Part shown: in pieces, positions 1 through 63,998 of the stretch
Numbering within the stretch: position 1 is the stretch's first letter
Layout of the letters: each line of letters starts with the position of its first letter
From: Phyllobates terribilis
Lineage: Eukaryota
Length of the DNA stretch: 64,000 bases
Direction: 5' to 3'
Assembly: GCF_046119375.1 (NCBI RefSeq)
Contig: NW_027362769.1
Location: 366,482,001 to 366,546,000, forward strand
The notes under the pieces: model-generated
What the model was told of the DNA's origin: nothing
Seen by the model: only the letters and a program-made list of their open reading frames with translations
Databases searched by the model: none
Program-made: the position numbers and the translations under genes

Positions 1-257
1 TGCTGGCGATGATACTCAAGTCGTCGTCAGGGTAGCGGATTATATCCGAGTCATTCCAGTACTGCTTGAAGAGCACGTACGGGATGGTGGTGACCTGTGA
101 CCCGGTGTCCAGTAGGGCACTCATAGGAATGCCATCCAGTACCACAGGCAAGACTGGACGTCCTCCCACGTATTTGTCACGCCAGTTCGATGGGCCTGGT
201 GATCTTATTCCTAGGGGTTGGCCCTCTACCCCAGGTTGTGCCAGTTTAAAGGACAGT
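1..257 (-). pseudogene. Aspartic protease region of element B polyprotein
   Basis: Manual translation PLNWAQPGVEGQPLGIRSPGPSNWRDKYVGGRPVLPVVLDGIPMSALLDTGSQVTTIPYVLFKQYW..., in frame with gag once element A and one TSD copy are removed. Confidence 0.88.
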
Positions 258-5230: not shown

Positions 5231-6187
5231 ACAGTACCTTGCCATATGTCCGGGTTGATTGCAGCGGTGGCAGATGGGTTGTCCGTCCTCGTTGTATCGG
5301 TCGCTGGGTTTTCCTCTGGCCGGTGGGGTCCTCCTTGGTCGGCGCCACGGGATATCCTCCGGTCCGGATGCTAGCTGGATCTTCCCTGGAGTAGAAACCT
5401 GTAAAGACTGCACAGTTCGGGTTAGCGCAGCAACGCTTTTAGTTAGCTCTTGGACCTGATGGTGCAGGTCTGTAGCCGGGTCATTGTTTAAAGCCTGCGC
5501 ATCAGCTCCCACAGGCCCTGCCGACAAGGGCGCCGTCTCCTGGTGGTAAGTGGTAGTAGGGCGTCTGTGGGTCACAGCGCCACCTGGTGCCGGTTCTCGG
5601 AGCACCCGGATGGCTCTGTCCTTGAACTGTGCAAAGTCCAGATGAGGGTCCTGTAAGGCCATTGCCCGCAACTGGGTTCGGTGGGCATTGCAATGTAGAC
5701 CCTCTATAAATTGTTCAGTCAACAGCTTGTCTTCGTTTCCCACGCCGTCAGGGTCGGCCTGCTTAATGGCTCTCAGGGCCTCTTGTAGGTTTAGTGCATA
5801 GTCCCTTATATTCTCATGTGCTCACTGCTTACACCCGTAGAATCTAAGCTTGATCTCGGCTGAGGTACGGGTATCAAATGTGTCCTTCAGCCGGGCTAGT
5901 ATCTCTGCGACAGTCCTCCTCCTCCCGAGTGGCCAGGACTTTACCTCCCTTTGGGCTGCCCCTTTTAATTGAGCCACCAGGATGCTCACTTTTTGCTCCT
6001 CTGTGAGGGGGTACACCTGGAAGAGGCTATCCAGCCTTTCTCTGAAGTCATTTAGGGTATGTGACTCCCCTGAGTACTGGGGTAGCCAGGCTGCCCCCGG
6101 GATATAGGGCATAGTGAAAGGCATGACCGCAGCAGCGGTGGCGCTGGCGGTGGCTGTGGCAGTGAAGCTCTCCTCTGTATCCGACAT
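5231..6187 (-). pseudogene. gag: gag of element B, with one in-frame TGA at 5822-5824
   Basis: ORFs 5822-6187 and 5225-5743 share a frame; reads through as FYGCKQ*AHENIRDYALNLQEAL (probably CGA>TGA); ends in CCHC knuckle. Confidence 0.85.
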
Positions 6188-6426
6188 CCTCCTCCCCCCT
6201 AGTGGACCGTGGCCTACCTTGCGATGATCCTCTTCCGTAGGCCGCGGCTCCGCAGTGGATCGTCAGGGTTGAGGACCTTCCGTCGCGCTCCTGTGACGTC
6301 GGCGTCTGCTGGGCTCCTTCCAGGACCTTACGCAACGTCCGGACGTGAGGCGGAGCTTCAGTTCTCGCGCGCTTTCGGAGTCCACGCCCCTCTTCTTCCC
6401 GCGCGGCGTCCTAAAGATGGCGTCCA

Positions 6427-6538
6427 ATGGCGGGAAAACTCCACGGATGGCGTGAAGAAGGCAGAAGATGGCGTCGGATGGCGGGAAAACTCCACGGATG
6501 GCGGGAAGAAGGCAGAAGATGGCGTCGGATGGCGGGAA
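6427..6538. repeat. About 2.2 copies of a 51-bp tandem repeat in the leader of element B
   Basis: ATGGCGGGAAAACTCCACGGATGGCG(T/G)GAAGAAGGCAGAAGATGGCGTCGG repeated. Confidence 0.8.
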
Positions 6539-6610
6539 TCCTCACCACAGGTAAGTTTAACAGTCTCTTTTTTTTTCAGGCACGCAGTAGTCGGTGGTTG
6601 CGGGCACGGG

Positions 6611-6628
6611 ATCCTGCCGACTACGCCA
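6611..6628 (-). promoter_or_regulatory. tRNA-Ser primer-binding site of element B
   Basis: TGGCGTAGTCGGCAGGAT is the 18-nt complement of the vertebrate tRNA-Ser 3' end (...ATCCTGCCGACTACGCCA, from memory); 4 nt from the LTR. Confidence 0.9.
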
Positions 6629-6632
6629 AAGT

Positions 6633-7675
6633 TGACGCGCCCCCTGGGCCTCTGTTGTGTAGCGTTGCGCACGCGGGGACTACCCGGAGCCAGATCTGAT
6701 AGGGGTAGTAGTCCTCATGGCGACGATCCGGTCCGTGCCCAGGGTGTCAAACCAAGTGGCAGAATTTAGTAGAAGATGTTATAGTGTTCGACTACGCCAC
6801 CCGTTGAATGCGGTTATGAAGCCGCCGCTGCAGGGCAGACCGCTGAGGCCGGTGGTACGGTTGTGCAGCGTGGATAGTATAACCCCCAACGGGAGGGGTA
6901 TGGCCTCAGGGCAGCGGACGTGGATGATGGGGATAGCAGAATTGCACGCAGGCACTAGGAACCACTCAGAGACGGTGCGGTGTAGTTCAGGGTCTTTACT
7001 GGTGGCAAAGGTAGACCCTTCCGGGCGTACTGGCTAGCGATCGGGGCCTGGTCAGTCTGTGAGCAGATAGAATCTCCCCCGGCCAGGCGGAGTTGTAGGC
7101 CTCCCCGACTTATTGTACTCTCCCTGGCTACCTTGCTAGAAGCGGGTAAAAGTAGCCCACGTCCCTGAGTGTACCGTGTGGTGCTCACCCGTATGGCCGG
7201 TGACTCGGGGCCTTCTGGTAGCCTCCGCTCCACAACGGCGGTGCTGGTCCCTTGCGTGTGACCGTGCCTTCGGGTTTCTTGGCCAGAGGACCTGAAATCC
7301 CCTGCCGGTCGGTTTCTGCTGCTGGGTATGGATCAGTCCCCATTGCCTCGGACTCCGTGTCCGGTGAGATCTCTTCAGTCAGGACGAGCTCTACAGCTTC
7401 CAGTCTCTGACCCCTTTTATCACTGCTCCCACATAGCTCCTGATCTTGCTCTCTCTGTATCTGCTCCACTCCAGACCAGACTGTGTCTCTGTCTGGGACT
7501 CCTCTTCTTCTCCTCTAACCCCGCCTCAGCCCCAGTTTATATAGGGGAAGTTCTTCCCCTCCCAGGACTGGGCATGAAGTGTTGCATGCTTAGGGTTCCT
7601 GACCAGGAGACCTCCCACCTGCTCTCAGACGTAATATTGCTATTACTGTGGTAACCAGACCCCTGGGGTGCCACA
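6633..7675 (-). repeat. 5' LTR of element B
   Basis: TGACGCGCCCCCTGGG...GGGGTGCCACA; TATATAAA on minus strand near 7536-7543; shares blocks with LTR at 61871. Confidence 0.88.
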
Positions 7676-20345: not shown

Positions 20346-21704
20346 TGTGACGCCTCTACTCAGAGAAGCCCGTGTTTTACCCTGGGTGATGAGGGACTCG
20401 GTGTCGGGCCCTGTGATGGAGAGATGGGATGCAGCCGTGGCCTGGGCCTGACTCGTGCTCAGGGCCGTCACATTAGAAAGAGATGCTGTGGGCTTGTCCG
20501 GGTTGAGTGGCTTATTTTAATGACTACGCCACCTGTGGTGCCTGGTGAAGGGTCACCAGCGCCGCTGCAGTCCGCTGAGGCCCGGTGTCATGGCGGCTAA
20601 AGTTCTCGCTGCTCCCCACAGGCGGAGCAAGGCCTCAGGGCAGGCAAACAGGAAAGAGAGGGGGTAGTAGTGCGGGGAGTACGGGCACCGCGTCGCATGG
20701 TATGCCGCGTAATGAACAGTCCGGAGGCCATAGGGGTGAACTTCCAAGGCTTTACTCACTTAGAGATGTCAGCGGGAAGGCGTCTCCCTGCTCCCTGCGG
20801 AGTCCTGCGGCCACCAGGGACGGGGGTCCGACTACCTCCGAGAAAGTCCAGTGTTCGGTAGCGACCCTACACCAGAGTGTTCCTGCACTATAAACTTCAC
20901 CCTTTCCCGTCTGTGCGTGTGTAGATAGGCCGGGTCTCCCTCTGAGCTCCTCTCAGGACTAGGGCACGGGTGGCAATTCCTCTCCATCCGATGCCCGGTG
21001 GGATCCTCAGGGCCTAACCGGGCTTTCCCGTCCAGGACATAGAGTACAAGGTCGGGTGTCGAGGGCCGGTACCCCTCTTGCAGCCGGAATCCCTCTGAAT
21101 AGATCAGGTAGTCGAGGACAGGTGGCGTGCTCCGCTCCGTCTGCATCCTCCCCGGGACCCATTTTCTGGGGAGCCACACTCTAAAGCTCCCAGGGCCTTC
21201 TTGATCCTGGTCCTTGGCCGGGTTGAGACATTACTTGTCTACAACCTACCTCTCGTCCCAAGGCCAGGGTACGAGGGCTGTGTCCCTTACCGGCGCAGGC
21301 CCACACAGGATCTGCGCTCCCGGAGGGAAGTCACATTACACACAGTATTTTGACTGCAAAGAGACAGCCGACAGACTAGCAAAGGCTAGACAAAGGACCA
21401 GAGAAGAACAACAGACCAAGATCAAAGATGGCTTTCTATTAAATATGAAATTTAAGGTGTAACTAACTTGTAAGTCCTCCACCCACACCCACTAACTGCT
21501 TCCTACCACTTTGTGTTCCCCAGTCTCCCTGTAACCAGGGGAGCAACACCTAGTGCATACTAGCTCCCTCTGGTGGAGAAGTGTGGTGTTGGATGCAAGG
21601 CTGGGTCGCGACCATCACACCGGGCTTACCTCAGAGGAGGAACACTACACTCCATTAGAGAAGCGCAGCATTCCTGTGGCGGTCAAACCCTCAGGGGCGC
21701 CACA
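20346..21704 (-). repeat. 3' LTR of element D (1359 bp)
   Basis: TGTGACGCC...GGCGCCACA inverted termini. Confidence 0.88.
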
Positions 21705-21855
21705 TTACCCCCTGGTAAAACACAGCACGTCCGCGGGCTGCAAAAGAAGCAACACCCAGGATGTTTTCTTTTTATGATAACATGCAAAACTATCATCCCT
21801 TTATGGGAGGCACATTTCTTAAACGTTACATAACAAGGTGCATAGTATAAAAGTA

Positions 21856-24336: not shown

Positions 24337-24498
24337 TTAAACTTCGGGCTGCCGTCTTGGAAAGGGCTCATTCCTCCCGACGGTGGCTAGCCGGTCCCCT
24401 GAGGCTGAGCGCGGGGTGGCGTCACTCCCGGACACTTTGTGTACGTCCAGGGCGTACCACCCACGCTCCCCCTGGTGGCGAGTGAAAGTCACTGTGTC
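24337..24498 (-). pseudogene. C-terminal half of a cold-shock-domain ORF in element D, truncated by CR1
   Basis: Manual translation DTVTFTRHQGERGWYALDVHKVSGSD...PEV*, aligning with DEVTFTRHKCAKGPYALHVHR of element E. Confidence 0.7.
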
Positions 24499-42356: not shown

Positions 42357-42425
42357 TAAGCCTGTACATATAACAGGCGCCTCCAGCTCCGGCCTCAGTG
42401 TTTTGTTGTAGTTCCGCAGCACACG

Positions 42426-42660
42426 ATGGCAGAGACCGCACCAGCCGCCGCTCCCCCTCCCGCGGAACCGGCCGCCAAATCCAAGAAGCAGCCGAAGAAA
42501 TCCGCCGCCGGGGGCGTCAAAAAAAGCAAGAAGCCCTCCGGTCCCAGCGTCTCCGATCTGATCGTGAAAGCCGTGTCCGCCTCTAAGGAGCGCAGTGGGG
42601 TGTCTCTGGCCGCCCTGAAGAAGGCTCTGTCCGCCGGAGGATACGATGTAGGGAAGAACA
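42426..42660 (+). pseudogene. H1: 5' third of histone H1, fused to H4-upstream DNA
   Basis: [12 protein letters not shown]...GGYDVGKN, then sequence matching 56473 onward. Confidence 0.92.
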
Positions 42661-43473: not shown

Positions 43474-43911
<438 letters not shown>

Positions 43912-43943
43912 TTGTGTTCTCTGCTCCATCCTGACAACCCAAA

Positions 43944-43959
43944 GGCTCTTTTCAGAGCC
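43944..43959 (+). terminator. Histone 3' stem-loop (H4)
   Basis: GGCTCTTTTCAGAGCC followed by ACCACA and a purine-rich element. Confidence 0.96.
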
Positions 43960-45285: not shown

Positions 45286-45301
45286 GGCTCTTAGAAGAGC
45301 C
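45286..45301 (-). terminator. Histone 3' stem-loop (H2A)
   Basis: GGCTCTTCTAAGAGCC on minus strand. Confidence 0.94.
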
Positions 45302-45335
45302 TTTGGTTGTTCGGACAGATGTGGAGGAGCGGCGC

Positions 45336-45718
45336 TCACTTGCTCTTGCTCGCCTTGCTGCTCTCGGTCTTCTTGGGCAGCAGCACGGCCTGGATGTTGG
45401 GCAGGACGCCTCCCTGGGCAATGGTCACCCCACCCAGCAGCCTGTTGAGCTCCTCGTCATTGCGCACCGCCAGCTGCAGGTGACGGGGGATGATGCGGGT
45501 CTTCTTGTTGTCCCGGGCAGCATTGCCGGCCAATTCCAGGATCTTAGCAGTCAGATACTCCAGCACAGCGGCCAGATAGACCGGAGCGCCGGCGCCGACT
45601 CTCTCGGCATAATTGCCCTTGCGGAGAAGCCTGTGCACACGGCCGACTGGGAACTGGAGTCCTGCCCGGGATGAGCGGGTCTTTGCCTTAGCACGGACTT
45701 TGCCTCCTTGTTTGCCGC
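45336..45718 (-). pseudogene. H2A: Histone H2A lacking its promoter and first 10 nt; carries E61K
   Basis: Matches 58828-59210; ATGTCTGGAC is replaced by minisatellite; LTAKILE vs LTAEILE. Confidence 0.92.
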
Positions 45719-46426
45719 TGACAGGAGCCCATAGATTCTCCTGCCTCCAATAATATATACCTGACATGAGCCCATACATATCAGACTCTCGCCGACCGTG
45801 GAAACCTTCAAAAGGAACCTGAAGACCCACCTCTTCCGACAAGCCTACAACCTGCAGTAAACACCACTGCACGACCAGCTCTACCCTCACCTACTGTATC
45901 CTCACCCATCCCTCGTAGACTGTGAGCCCTCGCGGGCAGGGTCCTCGCTCCTCCTGTACCAGTCGCTGACTCGTTTTGTTAAGATTATGTAAATGCTTTT
46001 GTTATGTATATCCCTATCACATGTAAAGCGCCATGGAATAAATGGCGCTATAATAATAAATAATAATAATAATAATAATAATACATTCTGCTGCCTCCAA
46101 TAATATATACCTGACAGGAGCCCATAGATTCTGCTGCCTCCAATAATATATACCTGACAGGAGCCCATAGATTCTGCTGCCTCCAATAATATATACCTGA
46201 CAGGAGCCCATAGATTCTGCTGCCTCCAATAATATATACCTGACAGGAGCCCATAGATTCTGCTGCCTGCAATAATATATACCTGATAGGAGCCCATACA
46301 TTCTCCTGCCTCCAATAGTATATACCTGACAGGACCCATAGATTCTGCTGCCTCCAATAATATATACCCGACAGGAGCCCATAGATTCTGCTGCCTCCAA
46401 TAATATATACCTGACAGGAGCCCTTA
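45719..46426. repeat. 43-bp minisatellite (about 9 units) interrupted by an L2 fragment
   Basis: ACAGGAGCCCATAGATTCTGCTGCCTCCAATAATATATACCTG repeated. Confidence 0.92.
45781..46082 (+). mobile_element. 5'-truncated L2-clade LINE 3' end
   Basis: [22 protein letters not shown]2 tail, 3' stem-loop AGCGCCAT-GGAATAA-ATGGCGCT, (AAT)n tail. Confidence 0.8.
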
Positions 46427-46652
46427 GATGGCAGGTGGCGCTATTAACATAGTAACATAGTTTGTAAAGCCGAATAAAGACTTGCGTCCATCAAGTTCGA
46501 CCTGTTAGTTCTGTAATTGCTAAAGTTGATCCAGAGGAGGGCAAAAACCCCAAATGATTTGGCCAATCTTCACCTGAGGAAAAATTCCCTCCCGACTCTG
46601 AAACCAGCAGTCAGAATAAATCCCTGTATCAACCTACTATTTTATTTTATTT

Positions 46653-49554
46653 TTAAGTATATGCTGAAATCTGCCTGGTATCTAGAAAAGCATCCAGTCC
46701 CCGCTTGAACTGGTGTAGTGAATCCGACATTACCGTCTCCTCACTCAGTGAATTCCATAGTCTCACTGCTCTTACCGTAAAGAACCCCTTCCTATGCTGG
46801 TGCTGAAACCTTTTCTCTTCCAGTCTTAGTGAGTGCCCTCTTGTTACCGTAATATCCCTCCTTTTGAACAAATCTCGGGCAAGATCTCTATACTGTCCCC
46901 TAACATATTTGTACACATTTATTATGTCCCCCCTCAACCTTCTCTTTTCCAGGCTGAATAGTCCTAGTTTTGCCAACCTCTCTGGGTATTGCAGTCCCTC
47001 CATTCCCTTTATTAATTTTGTTGCCCTCCTTTGTACCTTTTCAAGCTCATTTATATCCTTTCTATATATTGGGGCCCATAACTGAGCACAGTATTCCAAG
47101 TTTGGTTTGACCAGTGCTTTGTACAGTGGAAGAACAATGTTCTCATCCTTTGCAGCTATACCTCTTCTGATACATCCCATTACCCTGTTTGCCCTTACAG
47201 TAGCGGCCTGACTTTGGGCACTCCAATTTAGTTTGCTATCAACCAAGATGCCCAAGTCCTTCTCCATCTCTGAATTCCCCAATGATTTCCCATTCAGTGA
47301 GTACTGGTGACTTCCATTTTTCCTTCCCATATGTATGACCTTACATTTCTCCTCGTTAAACCTCATTTGCCATTTAATGCTCCACCTACCCAGCTTATCC
47401 AAATCCCTCTGTAGGTCTGCACTATCCTCTTTTGTATTAATTGTTTTACATAACTTTGTGTCATCTGCAAATATTGACATTTTACTATTTATCCCGTTGA
47501 CTATGTCGTTAATAAAGATATTAAATAACATTGGGCCTAGTACAGACCCCTGTGGTACCCCACTAGTGACGCTTACCCAATCTGAGTATATTCCATTTAT
47601 AACCACCCTCTGCCTTCTATCCTTTAGCCAGTTCGCTACCCACTTGCAGACATTTTCCCCCAGCCCCATCATTCTCATTTTGTATACCAACCTATTATGT
47701 GGCACGCTATCGAACGCTTTTGAGAAGTCGAGATACACGACATCCACTGGTTCCCCCTGATCTACTCGAGAGCTAACCTCCTCGTAGAAGTCAATCAGGT
47801 TTGTTTGGCAGGAGCGATTCCTCATGAATCCATGTTGGTTCGGGATTAAAAGATTATTAGCATCAAGATGCTCCGTAATTGCCTCTTTAATGAAGCTTTC
47901 AAAAATTTTGCCCACAACGGACGTCAGACTCACCGGCCGATAGTTTCCGGCGTCACTTTTCGCTCCCTTTTTGAATATTGGCACTACATTCGCCTATCGC
48001 CAATCAAGTGGTACAGACCCAGTCTCAACAGAGTCCTTAAATATAAGATATAACGGTCTGTCTATCACATTACTTATTTCCCTCAGTACCCGTGGGTGTA
48101 TGCCATCAGGTCCTGGTGATTTGTTTATTTTAATGTTACTGAGGCGTTTCTGTACCTCAACTTGGGTTAGATTAGTCATACTTAGTGGAGGATTAAGCTT
48201 GTCACTTCTCATTTCTCCTGTTAGTTCTATTTCCTTTGTGAAAGTTGTCGAAAAAAAATTATTTAATAGATTAGCTTTATCCTCATCTTTCTCTATGATT
48301 TTGCCTTCCTCACTTTTTATCGGTCCAATATTATCCGATTTAATCCTTTTACTATTTCTATACGTAAAGAACAGTTTGGGATTTGATCTACTTTCCCTAG
48401 CAATACGTCTCTCTGTTTCCTCCTTCGCTATTTTTATTTGTTTTTTTACAGGTTCTCGTTTTTTCCTTGTAACACATTAGTGCCTCCTTACTGTTTTCCT
48501 GTTTTAATCTCTTGAATGCCTCTTTTTTGCTATTTAACGCCCCTTTTACGTTCTTGTTCAACCATATTGGTTTCCTCTTATTTCTGGCCCTTTTATTCCC
48601 ATACGGTATATACCTCTCGCACTGAGAATTCAGAATTCTTTTGAAGGTTTCCCATTTACTATTCGTATTCCTTTGATTAAGAACTTTGTCCCAGTCTATA
48701 AGTTGAAGGCTTTCTTTCAGCTGATCAAACTTCGCCCTCCTAAAGTTTAATGTTTTTGTTGTTCCCTTATTGATAACCCTACTGAAGGGCATTTTGAAGT
48801 CGATAATATTATGGTCGCTATTACCTATGTGCCCCCCTTTCTGTACCTCAGTTATTCTATCAGGCCTATTAGTCAATATTAAGTCCAACACGGCCTTCCC
48901 TCTCGTTGGTTCCTGCACTTGTTGGGAGAGATAATTATCCTTAATATTTGTCAAGAACCTTTTACCTTTCTGAGATCTACAGGTTTCTGTTTCCCAGTCA
49001 ATATCCGGGTAGTTGAAATCCCCCATTACAATCACTTCATTATGTTTTGCTACTTTGTCTATTTGTCCTAATAGCAGATTCTCATTCTCCTCTGTTATAT
49101 TGGGTGGCTTATAGCAGACCCCCAGTAATATTTTATTATTATTTTTAGTTCCCTCTATCTCTACCCACATGGACTCGACCCCCTCTTCTCCCTCTCCTAT
49201 ATCTTCCCTTAGTCTGGGTTTTAGACATGACTTTACATATAAGCAGACTCCTCCGCCTTTCCCCTGTTTCCGGTCCCTTCTAAATAAACTATAATCTAAT
49301 AAATTTACCGCCCAGTCGTAGCTATCGTCTAGCCAAGTCTCTGTTATACCTACGATGTCATACCTCTCCTCCGATATAAGCGCCTGCAGCTCATCCGCCT
49401 TATTGGTCAGGCTTCTTGCGTTGGTCAGCATGCAAGATAAAACTTTGGGGTTATTTAGCATCCTATTCTTCTCTAACGATCTAACTGTACAATCCCCACC
49501 CCCCTCTCCACCCTCATTATATTCACTTCTCCCCTTCCCCCTTGCTTGCCTCAC
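46653..49554 (-). pseudogene. CR1 ORF2 (endonuclease-RT)
   Basis: TNARSL, GITETW, GDFNYP, LDLIL, SDH; +1 frameshift in the A-run near 48441-48447; CAG>TAG at 47994; FADD retained. Confidence 0.93.
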
Positions 49555-49592
49555 ATCCCACCTATTTCCTTGGTTCCCCCCCCCCCCCGTCT

Positions 49593-50599
49593 CTAGTTTA
49601 AAAACTCCTCCAACCTATTAGCCATCTTCTTCCCCAGCACCGCTGCACCCTCCCCATTGAGGTGCAGCCCGTCCCTACGGTAGAGCCTGTAGCCGACCGC
49701 GAAGTCGGCCCAGTTCTCCATGAACCCAAACCCTTCTGCCTTGCACCAACTCTTTAGCCACTTATTCACCTCCCTAACTTCCCGTTGGCGCTCCTGTGTG
49801 GCTCGCGGGATTGGTAGTATTTCTGAGAAAACTACCTTGGAGGTCCTTGCCCTAAGCTTCCTACCTAGGTCCCTGAAATCATTTTTAAGGACCCTCCATC
49901 TACCACTCACTTTGTCATTGGTGCCGATGTGGACCATGACCGCTGGGTCTTCGCCAGCCCCACCCAGTAACCTGTCAACCCGATCCGCGATGTGCCGGAC
50001 TCGAGCGCCAGGGAGGCAGCACACTGTTCGGCGATCCCGGTCTTTGTGACAGATTACCCTGTCTGTCCCCCTAATAATAGAGTCACCCACTACCAGAACC
50101 TGTCTTGCCTGCCCTACACTTCCCCACTCCCCCGGCGGTCAGAGGATCTGTCGTGCTCCAATAATGCCGGTTCTGAACCAGCCTTCCTATACTTCTTCCC
50201 TCTATCCCTCCTAACTGTTATCCAGCTCCCTGCCTGTTCAGCCTGCACTTCCCCTCTATGCTCCACCCCCAGTATTGACCCATTGAGTGTCTGCTCGGTG
50301 AGCAGCAAACTCCGTTCCATGTTGTCGATGCTCCTCAGTACCGCTATCTGAGCACTTAGATCCAGAATTTGGGCTTCCAAGTGCACGATATGCTCACATC
50401 TCTCGCAGCAGTATGGATCCTCGAGCGGTTGCTCACGGAATGCATACATTGCGCAAGATGTACACTGCACGGCTCCGGCCAACATGGACGTCATTCTAAA
50501 TATGGGGATACAGTCAGTATATATATACAAGTACAAAACACAATTATTTATATATAGGTGTATGGATGGGGATAAATTAGGGATGTGCAAGTGTATCAA
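49593..50599 (-). pseudogene. CR1 ORF1 (zinc finger plus SGNH esterase), frameshifted near 50100
   Basis: CTSCAMY...CCERCEH; GDSIIRG, VHIGTND, DGLHLN. Confidence 0.88.
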
Positions 50600-52140
50600 T
50601 TAGATATCGGCGGGGGATCAGTTAAGTATCAAGTATGGACGGGGGAATCAGATAAGTAGGTCAGTTGGATTAATTAAGTAAAAAGTAAAGTAAAGAAAGA
50701 ATGAAATACAGTCAACAATTCAGTCCTAAGTCCTCCCTTCCAAACTCCCAGAATCCAAAGTCACTGAAAAACAAGTCACACACTTACTTTCGTTCGCACT
50801 GACGCTCCGGACACACGCAGCTCGTTCACACTCGCAAACTGAGAGATTTAAAGAGTTTTTTTTTTTCTTCCTTTTCCAGCAATGTACCCTTCACCTCAAT
50901 GCACTTCCAAAGGACTTGATGTCCAACCAGCTGCCCCTTATAAACCCTTAATTATGACCCCTTCCCCTTAATTAACCCCTTGTGAGTAAATCTACACCTC
51001 AGGATTTTATTGCAATGTAGTTAACCCTTAAATACACAGGTAGTTACCTAAGAAACTAAAACTGTAGTGAGAAAATAGGTTTAAAAATGCCCAATAAATC
51101 TAAACAGGTAGAAAAGCACTCAGCAGGTCACAATGCAGCACTCACCGCAATTCACACAAGTATTTTCTGCAGGATTCCCAAATACCTCTTCACTGAAAAA
51201 CAAGTCACACACTTACTTTCGTTCGCACTTACGCTCCGGACACACGCAGCTCGTTCACACTCGCAAACTAAGAGATTTAAAGAGTTTTTTTTTTTTTTTC
51301 TTCCTTTTCCAGCAATGTACCCTCCACCTCAATGCACTTCCAAAGCTGATTAACGCTTTCTAGACCGATAGTGCGAAAACTATGATTGAGTTCCTTCACA
51401 GCTCTGATCCTCAGTAATTTTGAGCGAGTTGTCCTGTGTTCAGTGGCTTTTTACTCAACCACTTGCTCCCCAGAACAGATATTCTGGGGTCTCCTTTATA
51501 TATATTTATCTGTGTCACAGAAGAGAAGATCTCACAACTTTCTAGCCTTTTCTTACTAATTTTCCTCCTTCCGAAGTCCTAGATTCCTCTTTCATTGCCC
51601 CCATAAAGTATGACACCCCATAAAAGTGTACCCCAAACACAGTATGACACCCACAAGGGGAATGACTCCACATGCACAGTATAATGAAGCTATTGTACCC
51701 CACCTCAAATCCCAAGGCAAAGTTTGGTGACCCCAACACAGTATGATCCCCCAATTGTGACCGCCACACAGCCCTCCATACAGCATAATGGGCTTACATA
51801 CAGTATAATAGCCCCTACACAGCCCTCCAAACAGTATGATGGACCCCACACAAACCTTCACACCATATAATTGCTTTCATACAGTATAATCGCCCCCCAC
51901 ATAGGCCTCAAAATATTTAATGGCCCCATCTAGCCTTCCATATAGTATAATATGCCCTCCATAATCCTCCATATAGTATAATGAACTTCCCATGGTCCTC
52001 CATAGAATATAATGCACTTCCCTTAGTCCTCCATACAGTATATTACACAGCCCATAGGGTAAAATGCAGCCCCCATATAGTATAATGCACCCCACAGTCC
52101 TGCAATATTATGGGCACCACGTACTCACTGATTTTAAAAT

Positions 52141-52430: not shown

Positions 52431-53074
52431 CTCACCGGAGATGTTTATGTGTTTGGTTGGGGGATGAGTCGCATTGTGAAGCTGGCGCCTTATCAGAGCT
52501 CTTCCCTCCATTACCTGCAGCAGCGTCACAGCTGCACACAGGGTCAGACACGATATTACACAGGTGATTGCAATCAGCCCCCTATGTGGATCATCTACTG
52601 ATGTGGATACGAGTTCATCCCCCAATACACTGCACATTCGGGGCGTACTTATATTACAGGTCAGGGAGGTGGCAGTCAGCGGAGGCCATCGCCTGTGTTA
52701 CCCTTCTGGGCTCTCAGCAGCTCCAGGTCGTCCCCACATCGTACAATCCGCTTCCTGTACGATGGATATTGTAGTAAAGATCCCTGTGATGGTGACAAGA
52801 GCCGGGAATAGGAGGAACGAGCTCCCGCAGCAGTTTTATCTTCCCGGATACACAGTGATGCGCAGATCGGGAGGACGGCGGCGATGATCCCGGGACCTCC
52901 TCTCGGCTCTTTCGCGGCATCTCTGCTGGTGACAGCTACAAACGGTCAGTGGAGATGATGGAGAAGAGGAAGCGACGGAGAAAGTGCGCTCTGCTGTCCG
53001 GTGTTAGCCGGTAAAGGGCTTTTATCCCGGGCAGGGAAGCACAAGAGGAAAGCGGAGCTCCACTCGGGATCAGC

Positions 53075-53200
53075 TAGAAGGAGGCGGGGCCTGTGCTCAG
53101 TGTCAGCGTCAGCCAATAGATGCTCAGGATGATGCAGCTCAGCAGCCAATCAGTGCGCAGTAAGCCTGTACATATAACAGGCGCCTCCAGGTCCGGCCTC
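53075..53200 (+). promoter_or_regulatory. H1 proximal promoter
   Basis: GC box GGAGGCGGGG, two CCAAT boxes (AGCCAATAGA, AGCCAATCAG), TACATATAA; duplicated at 42270-42390. Confidence 0.75.
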
Positions 53201-53252
53201 AGTGTTTTGTTTCCTATCAGGAGATATTTGTGTTCTAGTTCCGCAGCACACG

Positions 53253-53933
53253 ATGGCAGAGACCGCACCAGCCGTCACTCCCCCTCCCGCAGAACCGGCC
53301 GCCAAATCCAAGAAGCAGCCGAAGAAATCCGCCGCCGGGGGCTCCAAGAAAAGCAAGAAACCCTCCGGTCCCAGCGTCTCCGATCTGATCGTGAAAGCCG
53401 TGTCCGCCTCTAAGGAGCGCAGTGGGGTGTCTCTGGCCGCCCTGAAGAAGGCTCTGTCTGCCGGAGGATACGATGTAGAGAAGAACAACAGCCGCCTGAA
53501 GCTGGCCGTCAAGTCTCTGGTCATCAAGGGCGCCCTCCTCCAGGTGAAGGGCAGCGGCGCCTCCGGGTCCTTCAAGCTGAACAAGAAGCAGCAGGAGACT
53601 AAGGACAAAGCGGCCAGGAAGAAGTCAGCAGCTGCAGCCAAGCCCAAGAAGCCTGCTGCAGCCAAGCCCAAGAAGCCTGCTGCAGCCAAGAAAGCCGCCA
53701 AGTCTCCGAAGAAGCCCAAGAAGGCTCCGACCGCGGCCAAGAAGAGCCCGAAAAAGACCAAGAAGCCCGCAGCAGCAGCCAAGAGGGCGGCCAAGAGCCC
53801 CAAGAAGCCAAAGGCCGCTCCGAAGCCCAAGAAGGTGACGAAGAGTCCGGCTAAGAAAGTGGCCAAACCCAAAGCTGCCAAGAATCCTGCTAAGAAGGCA
53901 GCTAAAGCCAAGAAGCCCGCAGCTAAGAAATAA
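53253..53933 (+). CDS. H1: Linker histone H1 (226 aa)
   Basis: Globular domain [30 protein letters not shown]...[13 protein letters not shown]; K/A/P-rich tail with SPKK motifs; stem-loop downstream. Confidence 0.97.
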
Positions 53934-53964
53934 GCCAAAGCCGCCCTGTTAATTACCCCACAAA

Positions 53965-53980
53965 GGCTCTTTTCAGAGCC
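53965..53980 (+). terminator. Histone 3' stem-loop (H1)
   Basis: GGCTCTTTTCAGAGCC. Confidence 0.96.
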
Positions 53981-54572
53981 ACCACCTTGTTCCCTGCAGA
54001 GCTGTATGATCAGTGCCATCATCTTGTCCCCTTCAGAGCTGTATGATCAGTGCCACCACCTTGTCCCCTTCAGAGCTGTATCATCAGTGCCACCACCTTG
54101 TCCCCTTCAGAGCTGTATGATCAGAGCCACCACCTTGTCCCTGGCAGAGCTGTATGATCAGTGCCATCACCTTGTCCCCGGCAGAGCTGTATGATCAGTG
54201 CCATCACCTTGTCCCCGGCAGAGCTGTATGATCAGTGCCACCACCTTGTGCCCGGCAGAGCTGTATGATCAGTGCCACCACCTTGTCCCCTGCAGAGCTG
54301 TATGATCAGTGCCACCACCTTGTCCCCTTCAGAGCTGTATGATCAGTGCCACCACCTTGTCCCCTTCAGAGCTGTATGATCAGAGCCACCACCTTGTCCC
54401 TGGCAAAGCTGTATGATCAGTGCCACCACCTTGTCCCCGGCAGAGCTGTATGATCAGTGCCATCATCTTGTCCCCGGCAGAGCTGTATGATCAATGCCAT
54501 CATCTTGTCCCCGGCAGAGCTGTATGATCAGTGCCATCATCTTGTCCCCGGCAGAGCTGTATGATCAGTGCC
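53974..54572 (+). repeat. 16 x 37-bp minisatellite derived from the H1 3' processing signal
   Basis: Units start every 37 bp from 53974 to 54566; consensus CAG(A/T)GCCACCACCTTGTCCCC(TT/GG/TG)CAGAGCTGTATGAT; the first unit is the stem 3' arm, cleavage site and HDE. Confidence 0.93.
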
Positions 54573-55166
54573 CGTATATCCTGCCTCTTCTAGATTATAG
54601 TGTGTACAGGGAGCGGCTCCAGTGTTATAATGAATAAGCTTTTCCCCACATCTCCACATAGAGCTGCGCTGTGTCCCGATCACACCAGTGCAGGTGACCG
54701 ATCAGTGTAATCAATGGAGGGAAGGGGCCGATGTCCTACAGAAATCTACATCATCCTAATCAATCACCACTTGTAACCTGCATCTTTATTAGTGAAAGGA
54801 TTAGTGTGCGGTTATTACTTCGATGTGAGAATTGGAGAACCAGTGATTTGACTGATGATAGATTAGAGCCTGTACAGCTCCGTGTACTGGTGACATAGAA
54901 CAGTGACGACTGCGGCTCTTGCTGTAGAAGCCGCATGTAGACATGGTGTGACCCTGTGCCAGTATCCGCAGCCAGAAAAGAGTGTGAACAGAGACCCTGC
55001 CCCTCTTTATGAGGGCGGGATTACTGGGTGTTGGGTTGATTTCGTGAATAATGATTGGTCGCAGACATCACACGTGTTTTGGCGGCTCATGTTAATTTAT
55101 GAACTAGCCAATAGAGTTGTAGGGAGCGTGTTCACATGACGCGCTAACAGGAGCAGAGGAGTATAA

Positions 55167-55631
<465 letters not shown>

Positions 55632-55662
55632 ATCCGTCCTGCACGTCTGACTATAACACAAA

Positions 55663-55678
55663 GGCTCTTTTCAGAGCC
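55663..55678 (+). terminator. Histone 3' stem-loop (H3)
   Basis: GGCTCTTTTCAGAGCC. Confidence 0.96.
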
Positions 55679-57261
55679 ACCAAATCCTCCATAATATCGA
55701 GCTAATCCCTCACATCAGCTTCTCTGCCCTGATTATTGAATAATATCTTTATATAATCTATTAGGAGTCTGTACGGTGTTGTGAAGAAATCTAGAAAAAA
55801 TGCGCAGATTTCTTGGTGTATATGATGCGATCATTATAGGACGTCCATTATCCAGCGCTATCTCCTGTGAACACTCGCTGACTCCTATCAGCAGCACGGG
55901 TCTGATCCTGAAAACGCATCAGGATTAAGAGACTAATATCCTCTGCAGCTCTGTAGTAGGTTTATCTAGATAATATTAACCTACATTTTATAAAATCCCC
56001 ACCTCCTTCTTTCAAAGTTCTCTGTAAACTGCAGTATCTCGTTTCTTTATATTCCCGGCACTCGGAATATTGCTGGTGTGATGGAGTCACCATTGTTAGA
56101 ATCAGTTCTGCACTTTGTGTTTATAGAAAGCGGATACTGTTCCCTGGATCCTGGAAAATGATAGAAATTCCTGTATGGAACCAAGAGACCATTGATCGCT
56201 CAACACAAGCAAATTTCCTGATATCCGACAGTCCTGAAACTACGTGATACAGAAGGACAGAAAAAGCCTTCAGCCCCTGAGCGGGAACTTCCTATTCGGT
56301 AACTACTAACATTAGCTCCTCCCCTTCCTCTGCTGATTGGCTGAACACAGGACGTTAGGGAGTTTGAATTTCCCGCTCCTTGGAGTTTCCGCAGCTTCTA
56401 CATGTAATTGTGTTACTACTTCTGCTGTGAAGAGAAGTGTCCGGTCTATAGATAAAACTCCACTGACCACATTCATGTAATCACCTTCCAGATCACAGTG
56501 TATTCTCCATTGGATATGGGACCACTGGAATGAGAATCAATCAGCTGCTCAGTGATTTTGTTATTTATACGGTTCCTTTTTTATTTGACCTGAGCTGTTG
56601 TCATTATCTTCTACATGAAAATAACAAATGTTCTCTAAATGCAAATCTTCATATGAAGAAACAAGTGATATCTGAGTTTTATGATCTCTGACAATTACAA
56701 TACAAGTGTTATTAGGAGAAAGTAAATATTGTCATTTCTGATGAGCGGAAAATCCCAGTGGTGGCAAAATATTAAGTTTTATAATTCTGTTCCCAATTGA
56801 TAACAGTACTGTCCTGCCATTATCGTTTGCAGGAAGAGACCCTCTGTAAGCCAAACTGAGGGGATTCCCGGCTTATGAGCTGGTGTCAGTATCGGAGCAG
56901 TGCTGCTGACCGCGGCTTCCTCCCTGCACTGTCCTTAGAAGAGGCAATAATCCTGGCTGCCACAATCCTCCTCAAATCACCGCACCCCAAGAGCAATTCT
57001 ATCAGAAGTGACAAGCCCATCTTAGAAATGTTAGAGCTCAGTCAGGATCCTATAGATTAGTCGACGGGAGCAGCCAGAATGTCCCATGTAGATTGTACAG
57101 AATGCACGGGATGATGAGGGGAGTAGTAAGGTGCGGAAATGACCCTTCCTGGACATTAGTGAATAGCATGTTACGAATATGCTGGTATGATGGAAGTGGG
57201 GGTTAATCACTGTCAGTGCCGTTACAGGTATATTCAGCAGTGATCTGATGTTTCTATATGA

Positions 57262-57882
<621 letters not shown>

Positions 57883-57914
57883 TTGTATTCTCTGCTCCAT
57901 CCTGACAACCCAAA

Positions 57915-57930
57915 GGCTCTTTTCAGAGCC
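57915..57930 (+). terminator. Histone 3' stem-loop (H4)
   Basis: GGCTCTTTTCAGAGCC. Confidence 0.96.
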
Positions 57931-58777
57931 ACCACATCTTCTAGATGAGAGGCTACAATCTCTTGTTGGAGTAACAATCCCTGTGCTTGTGTGAATGCCA
58001 GTACAAGCTTTATACGCTGTTCATGAGTTAAAAATATTCACTCATTGATAACTGAGGATACTTGCACTGAAGGGATGAGTTTGTTGTGGTTGGAGTGATG
58101 TATAGTATTTGACGGGCTGATTGCGTTCCTTACAGCAATCTGTAGATATCCCGAGTTATGGAAGCAGTATCAGCTTTCTTTAATACAAGATACGCAACTG
58201 CTCCCATCAGTAGTGATGTTCCGAGTGCTGCTTACAGAATGGAAACATAAGATCCTGTGATTGAGGACGGGGCTTGTATCAGGCTCAGTGTATATGGAGG
58301 CCGCTGAAGGTTCATGACCTCACAAATGATTAGTGGAGAACCATCCTCTTTTCGATAAGAACCATTACCGTGTTCGGGGAAAGCTGCTCTGCGCTGTATT
58401 CTCAGAGGGGTAGAGCTGTGCTCAGACCGCATTGCTCAGATTGCGATCTCCGCTACAAGCAGAGGGGCGGGTAATAATCCGACGCACAAAGAAAGATTGC
58501 GCGGGAAACTCAAAACCACCAATTACAGACATCTCAGCAGGCGCCAACCAATACCAGATACAAGTGTTTTCTCCACCGTTTAACTCTCTATTAGCCGGGT
58601 CACTAAAATTAGTATCTGCGCTACAAAATATAGCAGGATCAACCTATTTAATGATTTACATTTCCGATCTATAGCAAATCATACAGTAGAACATAGAATA
58701 GATCGTGTTGTTCTCTCTATATAGTGTGGACCATCGCCTGCTATCAGCGGTGCCGGCTCTGATGAGGAGGATGTGGT

Positions 58778-58793
58778 GGCTCTTAGAAGAGCC
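58778..58793 (-). terminator. Histone 3' stem-loop (H2A)
   Basis: GGCTCTTCTAAGAGCC on minus strand. Confidence 0.95.
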
Positions 58794-58827
58794 TTTGGTT
58801 GTTCGGACAGATGTGGAGGAGCGGCGC

Positions 58828-59301
<474 letters not shown>

Positions 59302-61870
59302 TTATCATTGGATGGATCTGAAGCCGCCAATGGAGAGCAGACGTGTGGAAACACCAATAAGACGCAGCGGGCGCAGCTTACACAGGTCACCTGACTTTTT
59401 GTCCATGAGTTTGAAGTTCCCGCTCAGTGGCTGATGGCTTTTCTGTTCTTTGTCCCCATATAACACGAGGTTCTATGACCGACTTATATTGGTCGTTTAC
59501 ATCCCATACAGGAGTCTGGAGATTTTAGTTGAGCAGTCTCCGCTTTCTATAATACAAGACCCGGGGTCAGGGATGCTTCGGTTTCCTTTCATAGATATAT
59601 AGAGTGAATCAGCCAAAAGCTGTGATGTGCCCCGTGTGTCTGACCTCCCTTTATACGATATACTAGCCAGGGACGCATCCTACATGCGATATTTCAGGGA
59701 AGACCAATTCTGCTTTGACCCACCATATCCCCCCGATCATCTCCCCAGTAGTTTAATCCAGTAATTCATGTACAGATCAATTGTACAGCTACAGGGAGGA
59801 AGTGTGTGACAGGACATGTACGATCATGTATTGCAGATTGCTCAGAAAATTACACTGTTGTCCGGATCCCATAGGTCAGACATGCAGTTAGGTTATCGGT
59901 CATCACACCCTCACAGGAGCTTTATTCCTTTTCTATAGATTCCTGCTCCGTTACTGCTCGTTCTTCTGCTCTTTCACTTGTCCTCCTCCCCTTTATCCAG
60001 TGTCAGGACGGGCGGCTCTCGGGCAATATATCCACATGTAGAAGCTCCAAGAATGAAGAGTAGAACAATGAATCCCTTGTTAAGAGGAGAAATATCCCAA
60101 TACAATCTCTAGATAACTTCCTCTAATACCAGATGTAGCGATGTATAACGAATATAGGGGATCTCGGTGACACATTGAGAAAACAAACAATAAGACTCAG
60201 ATCTGAGCATCAATCTCCATCTGTATAATAACAACGATGAAAATAGTAAGTCCATAAAAGATCAGAGGACTTTAGTAGTCTGGAAAGAAAAGTGTTAATA
60301 TACTATAAGATGAAATCACTGCGGAAGTGCGGAGAGCTCCGATCACCAATCTGATTGTAAGAAGATGAAGTCTCCCCGGGGAGAAGTGGCCTCTGTGCTG
60401 TCAGTGCAGCTGCCGCCTCTTACAGGTTGTTGTTCCTGCAGGATATGGGGAGATATTAGCGGCTGGGCTCAATCAGGAAGACGGATGAGATGAGATCTTG
60501 GTTCTGGATCCTTTTCTATCATTATATGTATAATAAATTATGTTTCTAATGCAGATTGTAGAGAATAAATGATACAGCAGAAACATGGACAGCAGTAAGA
60601 AGTTTCTGACATTTGCAATCTGTCACCAAGTCATAACTCTGCAGCAATGTCATACATGATAGATACCTCTGTGCACACAGTACATAGCTCTCTGTGCTGC
60701 GATTACTACACAGCAGAAATCCTATCATACTGCAGTCAGATGAATGTGTTGATCTTGATATTAACAGGATCAGATACGATTGTGTTGTAGAGGCAGCGAA
60801 TACTCGCAGGGAATGTGTCCGTATGAGGCAGCTGGATGGACGCCCTGTGTAGCCGGAATACGGACGTCTGTGTGATGACCGCGTCCTGGGCACTGGAGTC
60901 TCGGATGGATGGCGGCCTCAAAAGGTTAATAACCTCCCAGAATAATAACAAGGCCGGCACATCCTCCACCTGCCGATCAGGAGAACGATCACATTTGTTC
61001 GGGGGCAGACCGCTCTGGAGGAGAGGACCCTGTATTCTCAGCGGGGTAGAGCTGCCCCCAGACCGGATTGCTCAAATTGCGATCTCCGCTATTAACAGGA
61101 GTCGTTAATAAATAATCCGGAGGACAAAGAACAACGATTGAGCGGGAATTTCAAAATCACCAACGGATCTGTGATCAGCCAATGACTGGCAGACATCCTC
61201 AGGCACCGACCAATACCGGATACAAGTATTTCCTCCATTTAACTCCTCAGTGGCCGTGTGTCTGCTTATTCACCCCTGAATTATACTGGTGCCTTGTCTG
61301 CTCCCCCAGCCCATGCTGAGTTCGGTCCCACTCATCCATTATGTGGCAGATGATAAATACAAACTATCTTGGGATGAACAACTGGATTCTGATACATGAG
61401 ATCTTCAGGATCAGACCCGTGCGGGTGATAGGGGAGAGCGAGTGTTCACAGGAAATGTCCCAGCTGTAGATGGACGCCGTGTAATGACCGGGTCCTGTGC
61501 ACTAAGACCCCGGCATAACACCCATCAGGCTGCTGGTAGATTATGTGAGGATATGGTCTCACTATCCATATTTGTAAGCCAAACCAGGAGAGTGATAAAT
61601 GCAGAATATATGCACTGGTATGTATTATACCTTTTCTCTGATTGCTCCTCATCTGGTTTTGGCTTCCAAATACTCAAGAAAAAGACTGACAAAATACTGA
61701 TCGTGTGACAGTAGCATTATTCGGTCTGTGGTAGGATCGGCGGGGACAATAGCGCCACAGATATTAAAGAGCTGTAGAGGATAATACGTGACTGGTGTAA
61801 TATCTAATGTCTGTACTCATGGTGTAATGTGCACTAGTTACATATTAGCCTGTATGTGGTATAATATATA

Positions 61871-63106
61871 TGACGCGCCCCCTGGGCCAGTGCTGTTTGG
61901 GGATTACCCGGATCAGATGGGGATTGTAGTCTCTGAGTGGCGGCGACCCGGTCCGTGCCCAGGGTGTCAAACTCAGTGTGTGGCAGTCTTGATAGATGTT
62001 ATTGGTGTTCTTAGTGTCGACTACGCCACCCGTTGATTTGCGGTCAAAAGGCCGCCGCTGCAGAAGGGTCCGCTGAGGCTGGTGGTATGTGTGCCGCTGT
62101 GGTAGTATAACCCCCAACGGGAGGGGTATAGCCTCAGGGGGTCAGATGTAGAGGATGGTGGTTGTGAAGGTGCAGGAGAGCTAAGCAAGAAGACTCAGTC
62201 GGGCTGTGCAGTTCAGGGGTTTTTACTTACGGGTGTTCTTATGGTCACTCTGGCCTGAAGCGACCACCCGAGCTGTGCTGTGTCCACCAGGTCCTGGACT
62301 CGGCCAACCCCCAAGCAATTCTGGAGCGTGGTCCTGAGCTCCTGTCTGACTTTCCCTCTCTTCTGGCCGTTCTCACTAGGGATCCACTTATGTCCGGCTC
62401 CCTCGGGTCTCTTGGTGGGTACACCTCTTCTGGGTTCCCTGACCCTATACTTGGTATGCCTTCCTAGTGGATTTAGTGAGGGTCGTGGCAGATCCTGCCC
62501 ACGACCTCCGGTCTCTGGCTAAGGTGTGCTTTTCTCTCTGCCAGCTTGGGATCCGGTACCCTGGGTGCCAACCCTTCACCCTGCTGTTTGTATTCTGGGG
62601 TCTTGGGGTTCCTTCTTCTTCTCTCTGGGTCCTTCTGACTCCTCTCTCTCTCTCTCTCAGACTTGGCCTTGGAGCTGGGCCCAGCCGGAACCACAACTCC
62701 CTGTCAGCCCTTCTGGCTGAGCTTCTCTGCTCTGCTCCTCTGACTCACTCTACAAAAGACTGACCCTGATCTAAGATGGTGCCCACCTTATATACTCCCT
62801 CTATGTGTGAGCTCAGGTGACCAGCACCCAATGAGCTCCTAGCATTACCCAGACTGCTCCCCCTATCTGCCCCTACACTACTGGGATGTTCCACCCCCCT
62901 CCCACTCCAGCCAGGGACAGACACTATCGTACCTGCACATATATTGGTGGGAGTACCGTCGATCTGTCCCCCGGAAATGGGATGTATGTAGTGTATGCAG
63001 CTATCTGAGCTCAGTTCCACACTCCATCCTTACCCGGGAGTGGAATACCACACCTCTGGCTTGAGGTGTAATACCCCTGTAGCAGCCGAGTCCTCAGGGT
63101 GCTACA
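61871..63106 (-). repeat. 3' LTR of element E (1236 bp)
   Basis: TG...CA ends adjacent to the PPT. Confidence 0.88.
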
Positions 63107-63572
63107 TTCCCCCCTGGTAAATCACAGCACGTCCTCGGGCTGTAAGAGAACATAAACATCCACAAACATACATTTTTTTTCATAAAACATAAACATATAA
63201 AACATCATATATTATCAGCATAAACTTTTCATATAAAGCTTTTCATAAATAACACTCTTGTTCCTCCGGCCACGGTGCAACTTGTGACCGGGTAAAGTGC
63301 GACAGTCTCTTGTAGTAAAAACAACAGTTTCCTATAAACCGGTAGGGGGCGCCTTAGAAAGCGCAACTATATACAAGGGAAGGTATGGCCGCTCTCAGTC
63401 CTCGGCCAGGTATCAGGAAAGGAATGACCGCTCTCAGTCCTCGGTCAGTGGGAATAGGGACACACGGGTTTCAGTTCAATTTGCTGGTCCCAACGGGGAC
63501 TATATTTTAACTAGCAGCAGTAACAGTTCTTATACCCTGACGGCTAACTATATACAGTCTCTTTACCGTACT

Positions 63573-63998
63573 TTAATGACGGCGTACTCCTGCTCCTCTT
63601 TCAGACCCGTCCGGATCCTCTTGCTCCTCTTCACACCGTAGCTCCTCCTCCGTCAGCCGGTGTACATGGAGGGCGTAGGGTCCTTTGGCACACTTGTGCC
63701 GGGTGAACGTGACCTCGTCCCCTACATATAGGTCACGACCTCTGTGTCCCTCCGGCAGATGGGACTCCACGTCTCTGCGGGTGACAAAGACGTCGCCGGG
63801 GGTGTGATGATCCCTGATGAAACCCCAACCGTGCTGCAGTTGGAATTTAATTACAGTCCCGGTGGCACGGGGACCGTGGGCTGCACGGGGGTTCCTCCTG
63901 GTCCTGCTCTTCTGCCTTGCGCTCTGTTCCTGCAGCCGCTGCTCTCGGACCCGCCTCTCTCTTCGCTCGCGGTCAAAGACCTCTAACTGCTGCCGGCA
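63573..63998 (-). CDS. Cold-shock-domain (Y-box-like OB fold) ORF inside element E; 5' end outside the window
   Basis: Frame open from the window edge: CRQQLEVFDRERRERRVREQRLQEQSARQKSRTRRNPRAAHGPRATGTVIKFQLQHGWGFIRDHHTPGDVFVTRRDVESHLPEGHRGRDLYVGDEVTFTRHKCAKGPYALHVHRLTEEE...*; RNP1-like GWGFI and RNP2-like DVFV. Confidence 0.82.
   Translation of the reverse strand, partial: CRQQLEVFDRERRERRVREQRLQEQSARQKSRTRRNPRAAHGPRATGTVIKFQLQHGWGFIRDHHTPGDVFVTRRDVESHLPEGHRGRDLYVGDEVTFTRHKCAKGPYALHVHRLTEEELRCEEEQEDPDGSERGAGVRRH

Follow-up and report, generated by a model that had tools for sequence, protein, structure and literature searches.

Introduction

Long terminal repeat (LTR) retroelements normally handle RNA with zinc-knuckle nucleocapsid domains, and the extra genes of LTR elements are mostly of unknown function. 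Y-box proteins, which contain a cold-shock domain (CSD), are the chief proteins by which frog oocytes mask mRNA, and true Y-box CSDs are nearly invariant in sequence. Additional open reading frames (ORFs) in LTR elements have been described in plants (the aORFs; PMC7264820), in bdelloid rotifer elements (PMC5408684) and as Cer1 CERV (PMC10309623), and orchid Ty3 elements carry an RNA demethylase domain (PMC9289625). In this study we describe an ORF for a CSD protein that runs off the edge of a stretch of 64,000 nucleotides from the poison frog Phyllobates terribilis (contig NW_027362769.1, positions 366,482,001 to 366,546,000), which we refer to as the window and within which all coordinates are given. 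The best explanation that we can offer as a whole, to which we assign roughly even odds (about 0.5), is that this ORF is the C-terminal third of an intronless gene of ~430 codons which is an additional-ORF cargo of a frog LTR-retroelement lineage, and that its CSD derives from a host Y-box-type protein. Like the described additional ORFs, it is an extra sense-strand gene near a 3' LTR, of host or unknown origin, with a proposed action on element RNA; none of the ORFs in those four reports, however, is reported with a CSD. A search of the literature, which did not cover Repbase or Dfam, found no paper that links a CSD with an LTR retrotransposon or an endogenous retrovirus. The CSD gene, provided that it is linked to the element, is apparently an undescribed cargo for LTR retroelements, which are themselves a known kind of element.

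Comparison with described proteins places the window CSD nearest to the Y-box proteins (YBX1/YB-1 and YBX2/FRGY2), with which it has in common the fold, a loop of eukaryote length between strands 3 and 4, and the GxGFI and VFV cores. Nevertheless, it is only ~30% identical to the CSDs of YB-1 and YBX2 and has Lys and Thr in place of the stacking Trp and His. The C-terminal basic/acidic islands of Y-box proteins are absent from the window protein, which has a 27-residue acidic tail instead, and they are absent as well from P0001, its closest relative (described below). The window gene further differs from Y-box genes in being intronless, in having a long helix directly before the CSD, and in its LTR-element setting. 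By structure, the top Foldseek match is CRHSP-24/CARHSP1 (PDB 3aqq; E = 1.2e-06, template-modelling (TM) score 0.64 on the target), which is likewise a small single-CSD protein with disordered flanks. Unlike the Y-box proteins, CRHSP-24 has no match to the window protein at the sequence level in the PDB, so that it is a neighbour in fold and not a demonstrable relative.

A more general likeness exists to L1 ORF1p and to the nucleocapsid of retroviruses and Gypsy elements, in which, as is generally known, a helix or coiled coil, basic residues and a single-strand-binding domain together form a self-associating RNA chaperone. The window protein differs from both in that its binding domain is an oligonucleotide/oligosaccharide-binding (OB) barrel rather than an RRM or a zinc knuckle, and it is homologous to neither. 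It also stands apart from nucleocapsid in that a related element in the same window, referred to below as element X, has a zinc-knuckle gag of its own.

A diverged Y-box-like cold-shock domain at the window edge

The minus-strand frame is free of stop codons from the window edge (63998) down to a stop at 63573-63575, so that 141 sense codons and a stop are present (63573..63998). The ORF listing for the window contains just a GTG-started piece of 65 amino acids (63573..63770) that is internal to this longer frame. An earlier note on this DNA had reported a frame of at least 141 codons open to the window edge in spite of the 65-residue listed piece, and had quoted from it a peptide with an R/E/Q-rich segment ahead of it and an acidic tail behind it; translation and ORF listing bear out the former, and the quoted peptide and both flanks are present in the translation. 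In random sequences, an open frame of 141 codons arises with a chance of 0.2% at the composition of the window and of 3% at the local G+C-rich composition. Because of this latter value, coding status leans chiefly on homology. Relatives were sought among 1.84 billion representative proteins, and the sole close relative is P0001 (XP_073514116), a 431-residue "uncharacterized" protein of P. terribilis with 81% identity over residues 284-419. By homology with this protein, a further ~280-290 codons of the window ORF are expected beyond coordinate 64000, and the ORF would be a separate gene starting at its own Met rather than the tail of an integrase.

The encoded fragment comprises three parts. 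Residues 1-43 (63870..63998, minus strand) form a long R/E/Q-rich alpha-helix, a possible coiled coil, followed by a basic linker; residues 44-114 (63657..63869) form the CSD, an OB barrel of five strands in which the loop between strands 3 and 4 is long; and residues 115-141 (63576..63656) form a short helix and an acidic tail of low confidence. Residues 46-113 match the Pfam CSD profile (PF00313) with 35.7 bits against a gathering threshold of 27 (E = 8e-09), and the match covers positions 2-64 of the 66 in the profile. In an AlphaFold model, for which 14 relatives were used, the mean predicted local confidence (pLDDT) is 85.7 and the barrel strands lie at residues 44-53, 58-63, 69-73, 95-103 and 106-114, with pLDDT of 89-96 over the barrel. 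The N-terminal helix (2-41) is modelled at pLDDT 96-87 for its first 30 residues and at 68 for residues 31-40, and a short helix at 117-125 follows the barrel, with the C-terminal part at pLDDT 53-63. When this model is compared with the PDB by Foldseek, only CSDs are matched at probability 1.0 (CRHSP-24, CspA, CspE, YBX2, YB-1, Unr and Lin28), and the TM score reaches 0.9 on Csp targets. A Foldseek comparison with the predicted viral structures of BFVD matched only CSD proteins of phages and giant viruses and no retroviral protein with this fold. Thus, the earlier proposal of a CSD held under both of the checks that accompanied it, the Pfam profile scoring above threshold and the structure prediction giving a confident five-strand OB barrel for which CSDs alone were matched in the PDB at probability 1.0. 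Matches to the NCBIfam "retron Se72 effector" and Csp models fall far below their cut-offs; these we set aside, as they merely restate the CSD.

A search with the single sequence scores YB-1 and bacterial Csp alike. When an eight-member family profile is used against solved chains, the top eight are all Y-box proteins (49 bits, E = 6.5e-12), with lower scores for CspA (40 bits) and Lin28 (25 bits). Alignment of the strand 3-4 loop requires one gap against YB-1 and five against bacterial Csp, which gives the loop a eukaryote length. The Y-box-like character and longer eukaryote-type loop that had been proposed for the domain therefore agree with both the profile ranking, in which YB-1 and YBX2 come first, and the loop alignment. 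Aligned with YB-1, the domain keeps the RNP1-like motif (GWGFI against GYGFI, with G, G and F invariant in the family), while the RNP2-like VFVH reads VFVT, with Thr for His, and the Trp of the strand-1 KWF is a Lys; these are the two replacements that the earlier note had pointed out. On alignment and model together, the domain is best described as a diverged Y-box-like CSD whose fold appears to be kept and whose binding face appears altered, and replacement of the Trp and the His suggests that specificity may be changed or weakened.

A polypurine tract and a 3' LTR follow the gene

A non-coding spacer of 466 nt (63107..63572, minus strand) separates the stop codon from an LTR. A motif of ~40 nt is duplicated within this spacer, which also has an A/T-rich tract and terminates in the polypurine tract AGGGGGGAA (63107-63115). 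The LTR itself is 1236 bp long (61871..63106, minus strand), begins with TGTAGCACCC, ends with GCGCGTCA, and thus has TG..CA ends; it has a TATA-like box ~300 nt in and a conserved 330-nt 3' end that is presumed to be U5. We assign 63106-61871 as a 3' LTR because the purine tract precedes it and no primer-binding-like stretch comes after it, the sequence beyond 61871 being unrelated and A/T-rich instead. The opposite assignment, as the 5' LTR of a downstream element, was rejected because a primer-binding-like stretch of the type found in element X is absent after it.

All four sites of the LTR start motif in the window are on the minus strand, at 63106, 28050, 21704 and 7675. The last of these begins the 1043-bp 5' LTR of element X (6633..7675, minus strand), which has the start motif and an 18-nt end as in the 1236-bp LTR. 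The last ~330 nt of the 1236-bp LTR (62200-61871) are ~80% identical to the end of the element X LTR, and the 18-mer end common to both, GGCCCAGGGGGCGCGTCA, has 2 sites in the window against 0.04 expected. The claim in the earlier note that the gene lies on the sense strand and ends shortly before a 3' LTR is hence borne out by the LTR ends, the purine tract and the homology with element X, and the distance of 466 nt given earlier between stop codon and LTR is exact.

The gene-then-junction order recurs at a second locus

The sole other CSD-coding sequence in the 64 kb is a truncated remnant of 26 codons that encodes the last two strands of the barrel (24421..24498, minus strand; tblastn). It is 50% identical to the window-edge ORF and is closest to P0021, a relative from another frog, with 84% identity over 19 amino acids. 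This remnant lies upstream, on the same strand, of the sole other junction between a purine tract and an LTR start in the window (21384..21750, minus strand), in which a purine-tract region (21705-21750) is followed by a 321-bp LTR-like repeat (21384-21704). The 44 nt that precede the LTR are conserved between the two junctions, with 81.6% identity over 76 nt spanning the junction, while elsewhere the two CSD loci can no longer be aligned. The 321-bp repeat has a partner at 27730-28050 that is 98.75% identical, with the similarity starting exactly at TG. Once a nested CR1-like copy and a 2-kb satellite-bearing segment are removed, the interior of this second unit amounts to ~1.85 kb, which is enough for one such CSD gene. 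Since two loci that can otherwise not be aligned both have the gene ahead of the junction, on the same strand, the gene appears to travel with the LTR element. This recurrence of a sense-strand ORF beside a 3' LTR consists of one degraded copy, and we regard the linkage of the CSD gene with an LTR element as probable. The second unit is degraded and atypical and is not cleanly defined as an element. Reading the conserved junction as a small host exon, with its acceptor- and donor-like flanks, was considered and rejected since both the 27730-28050 repeat and the element X LTR start exactly at TG.

The surroundings of the second unit are rich in other repeats. Two CR1-like copies on the minus strand (24507-26649 and 46452-50600) are 97.6% identical over 2.1 kb; the former is 5'-truncated and adjoins the CSD remnant, and the latter, longer copy encodes an endonuclease and a reverse transcriptase (RT), and an ORF upstream of them has a GDSL-esterase domain. 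An esterase-type ORF1 is known from some CR1/L2-like elements. A unit of ~6.1 kb with long arrays of a 67-bp satellite is tandemly duplicated at 28798-39847 (93% identity), and a 2-kb piece of it is present in inverted orientation in the interval that separates the CSD remnant from the second LTR junction (21855-23887). Tandem repeats that are rich in proline and histidine and contain several open frames (26648-27525 and 28051-28431, minus strand) flank the 27730-28050 repeat.

A family of single-CSD proteins in frogs

Beyond P0001, the search recovered distant relatives that each have a single CSD: P0002 from Ranitomeya variabilis (382 aa), P0003 and P0021 from Anomaloglossus baeobatrachus (481 and 549 aa), P0013 from R. 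imitator, P0127 from Bufo bufo, which NCBI names "Y-box-binding protein 2-A-like", and P0151 and P0063 from two sequencing-run assemblies. Matches with multiple CSDs were dinoflagellate proteins that score through repetition, and these were rejected as relatives. Members of the family are ~380-550 residues long, and the CSD is their sole Pfam domain. The model of P0001 consists of a short N-terminal helix, ~250 disordered Pro/Ala-rich residues, a 48-residue helix (271-318), the barrel and a disordered tail, and no capsid-like fold was found in this full-length model. Identity between the window ORF and P0001 is 89% in the CSD and 65% in the helix region; with P0002, P0003, P0013 and P0021, which are more distant members from dendrobatoid frogs, it is 46-61% in the CSD and 21-33% in the helix. 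Conservation concentrated in this way in the CSD would fit the pattern of selection on the domain. According to the gene tables, P0001, P0002, P0003 and P0021 are single-exon genes with their own start Met.

Two Logan contigs, L001 (1-2449) and L002 (1-1578), from the unrelated runs ERR14218477 and SRR23595345, contain near-identical copies of a distant CSD-family gene. One copy has three disruptions relative to the other, namely one stop and two deletions, one of which shifts the frame. In L001 there is an upstream overlapping ORF that is open to the start of the contig and resembles the disordered N-terminus of the family; no Pfam domain was found in it, and neither contig has nucleotide similarity to the window.

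Element X and neighbouring Gypsy elements

Element X occupies the other end of the window. A TGG-containing primer-binding-like stretch lies 3 nt past its LTR and is followed by a leader of ~450 nt with short tandem repeats, leader and gag together covering 5231..6632 on the minus strand. The gag, which is interrupted twice, by an in-frame stop and by a nested insertion, and the pieces of which were searched apart, has one CCHC zinc knuckle at its end (zf-CCHC, 19.8 bits, just below cut-off). The start of an aspartic protease with a DTGS motif lies beyond the nested element and runs off the window (1..257, minus strand); its weak retropepsin matches (RVP, 16.7 bits; Asp_protease_2, 17.5 bits) are both below cut-off. 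By BLASTP, no similarity was found between element X gag or protease and the two chromodomain Gypsy elements in the window. Their matches in Pfam and the PDB are generic, and the zinc knuckle and weak retropepsin matches in Pfam fail to separate Gypsy, retrovirus-like and Bel-Pao elements.

The element nested in element X is a Ty3/Gypsy chromodomain element (258-5230, minus strand) with a clean target duplication of 5 bp, ACAGT. The two LTRs of this element, 422 bp in length, are 99.5% identical, both of its frames are open (a gag-protease of 514 aa and an RT-RNaseH-integrase-chromodomain protein of 827 aa), and it looks like a recent insertion. The second chromodomain Gypsy element (7676-14196, plus strand) has LTRs of ~1.1 kb (91% identical as a pair) that hold tandem repeats of ~99 bp. 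On its left, this element meets the start of the element X LTR directly, head-to-head and with no base between them, an arrangement which is not a simple insertion because its flanks form no target-site duplication. Additionally, the 3' parts of both the 1236-bp LTR and the element X LTR (61910-62160 and 6690-6930, minus strand) contain a copy of TGGCGTAGTCG ~200 nt before the LTR end; TGGCGTAGTCG constitutes the first 11 bases of the primer-binding-like stretch of element X.

Alternative explanations for the locus

A number of observations weigh against the CSD gene being the cargo of an LTR element. The carrier's 5' LTR, primer-binding site, target-site duplication and any gag-pol would all lie beyond the window edge. 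At the second unit, the 321-bp repeat does not have a CA end, no target-site duplication was found around the unit, no primer-binding-like site was found after the upstream copy of the repeat, and the 5' half of the remnant's CSD gene was not found. No gene models for RT or integrase are present in the gene tables within 10 kb of P0001, P0002, P0003 or P0021. A guanylate cyclase gene is located 2.7 kb upstream of P0003 and a WD40 gene 3.7 kb upstream of P0002, both in divergent orientation, and these gaps therefore provide space for an LTR and a leader, not for gag-pol. The annotated homologues thus resemble ordinary stand-alone single-exon genes. Only a handful of family members are annotated, and a search by region gave just P0001 and P0013, which could reflect either a small number of copies or the masking of repeats ahead of annotation. 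As for the protein itself, two of the four classical base-stacking positions of a CSD are replaced, and judging by these residues nucleic-acid binding is not assured. Several of these points would suit a lineage-specific family of intronless, fast-evolving, Y-box-derived RNA-binding host proteins in anurans, next to one of which an LTR had merely inserted downstream. The homologues are annotated as stand-alone genes beside host genes, their annotated copies are few, one of them is named for a Y-box-binding protein, and the window is a repeat-dense histone cluster in which chance juxtapositions are common. This explanation nonetheless has to contend with an LTR that is not solo, since it comes with its purine tract and with 44 nt or more of internal sequence that is conserved, and with a gene-then-junction order and strand that are repeated at a second, highly diverged locus where flanking homology suggesting segmental duplication was not found. 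We consider it unlikely that the locus is to be explained in this manner.

The earlier note had assigned the carrier to Gypsy. Gypsy-type elements are abundant in poison-frog genomes (PMC11152451), and given this abundance of the Ty3 type the label may be right. In its full form this explanation calls for an autonomous, full-length Ty3/Gypsy element, with gag-pol just past the window edge and the CSD gene in the env or accessory slot between integrase and the 3' LTR. It accounts well for a sense-strand gene that ends 466 nt short of a 3' LTR preceded by a purine tract, for the homology of that LTR with the LTR of element X, a bearer of gag and protease, and perhaps for the upstream overlapping ORF that is open to the start of L001. 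However, that ORF is free of domains and resembles the family's own N-terminus, pol of the gene's carrier is not visible within the window, the gag and protease of element X are unlike those of the window's two chromodomain Gypsy elements with Pfam matches that do not discriminate, and the four homologues have no pol model within 10 kb, two of them being without upstream room for an LTR and gag-pol. An autonomous Gypsy carrier of this form is therefore a rather improbable one. Less probable still is that the frame is a decaying relic, open by chance or recency, and that its protein at present serves neither host nor element. At the local composition, an open frame of 141 codons is not very rare (3%), the second copy in the window is truncated, one of the two near-identical Logan copies is disrupted three times, and key RNA-binding residues are replaced. 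Set against this decay are the 89% identity of the CSD to the P. terribilis gene compared to 65% for the adjoining helix, intact full-length ORFs in at least four species, and a confidently predicted fold. Under the reading that we prefer, in which the CSD gene is cargo of a frog LTR-retroelement lineage, the carrier may be either autonomous with an upstream gag-pol, as in element X, or compact with the CSD gene alone. The gene neighbourhoods of the comparators lean slightly toward compact or stand-alone copies, while an autonomous carrier in the window is compatible with the gene tables, as pol genes could be hidden if repeats were masked prior to annotation.

Possible function of the CSD protein and its significance

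If the gene is linked to the element, its protein would use the barrel to bind single strands of RNA or DNA and the long helix to oligomerise. Such a protein could coat or chaperone the element's own transcript, whether for packaging, for annealing and strand transfer, or for masking and stabilising the RNA in germ cells. A function of this sort in binding element RNA, given the linkage, we put forward tentatively. Compact copies would draw gag-pol from autonomous relatives such as element X. More conjectural is the wider proposition of an anuran, chiefly poison-frog, LTR lineage that carries a Y-box-derived CSD with a self-associating helix, perhaps as the only gene of some copies, and that would thereby use an OB-fold chaperone.

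Were this correct, it would be the first CSD reported in any retroelement and would fill a role for an LTR element like that of ORF1p for L1. A captured Y-box-type CSD would also be a new example of host-gene capture, and a readable one. The oocyte, where Y-box proteins mask mRNA, is a tissue in which a germline element must survive. The gene would provide a defined protein whose RNA targets could be described along with its expression and its evolution, in genomes made up largely of elements of this kind. Should the members of this family prove to be ordinary host genes instead, they would still represent a branch of Y-box-like RNA-binding proteins that evolves fast, is unannotated and is confined to some frogs.

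Genomic setting of the window

Histone gene units are repeated at 14198-14826, 41545-45718 and 53010-59622, with 83-99% mutual identity, and include H3 (55221-55631), H4 (within 57274-57882) and H2A (58828-59244 and 45336-45890). The retroelements sit inserted in this histone cluster. Palindromic, self-inverted stretches are present at 15733-15975 (243 bp, 77% arm identity) and at 19763-20217 (455 bp, 87%).

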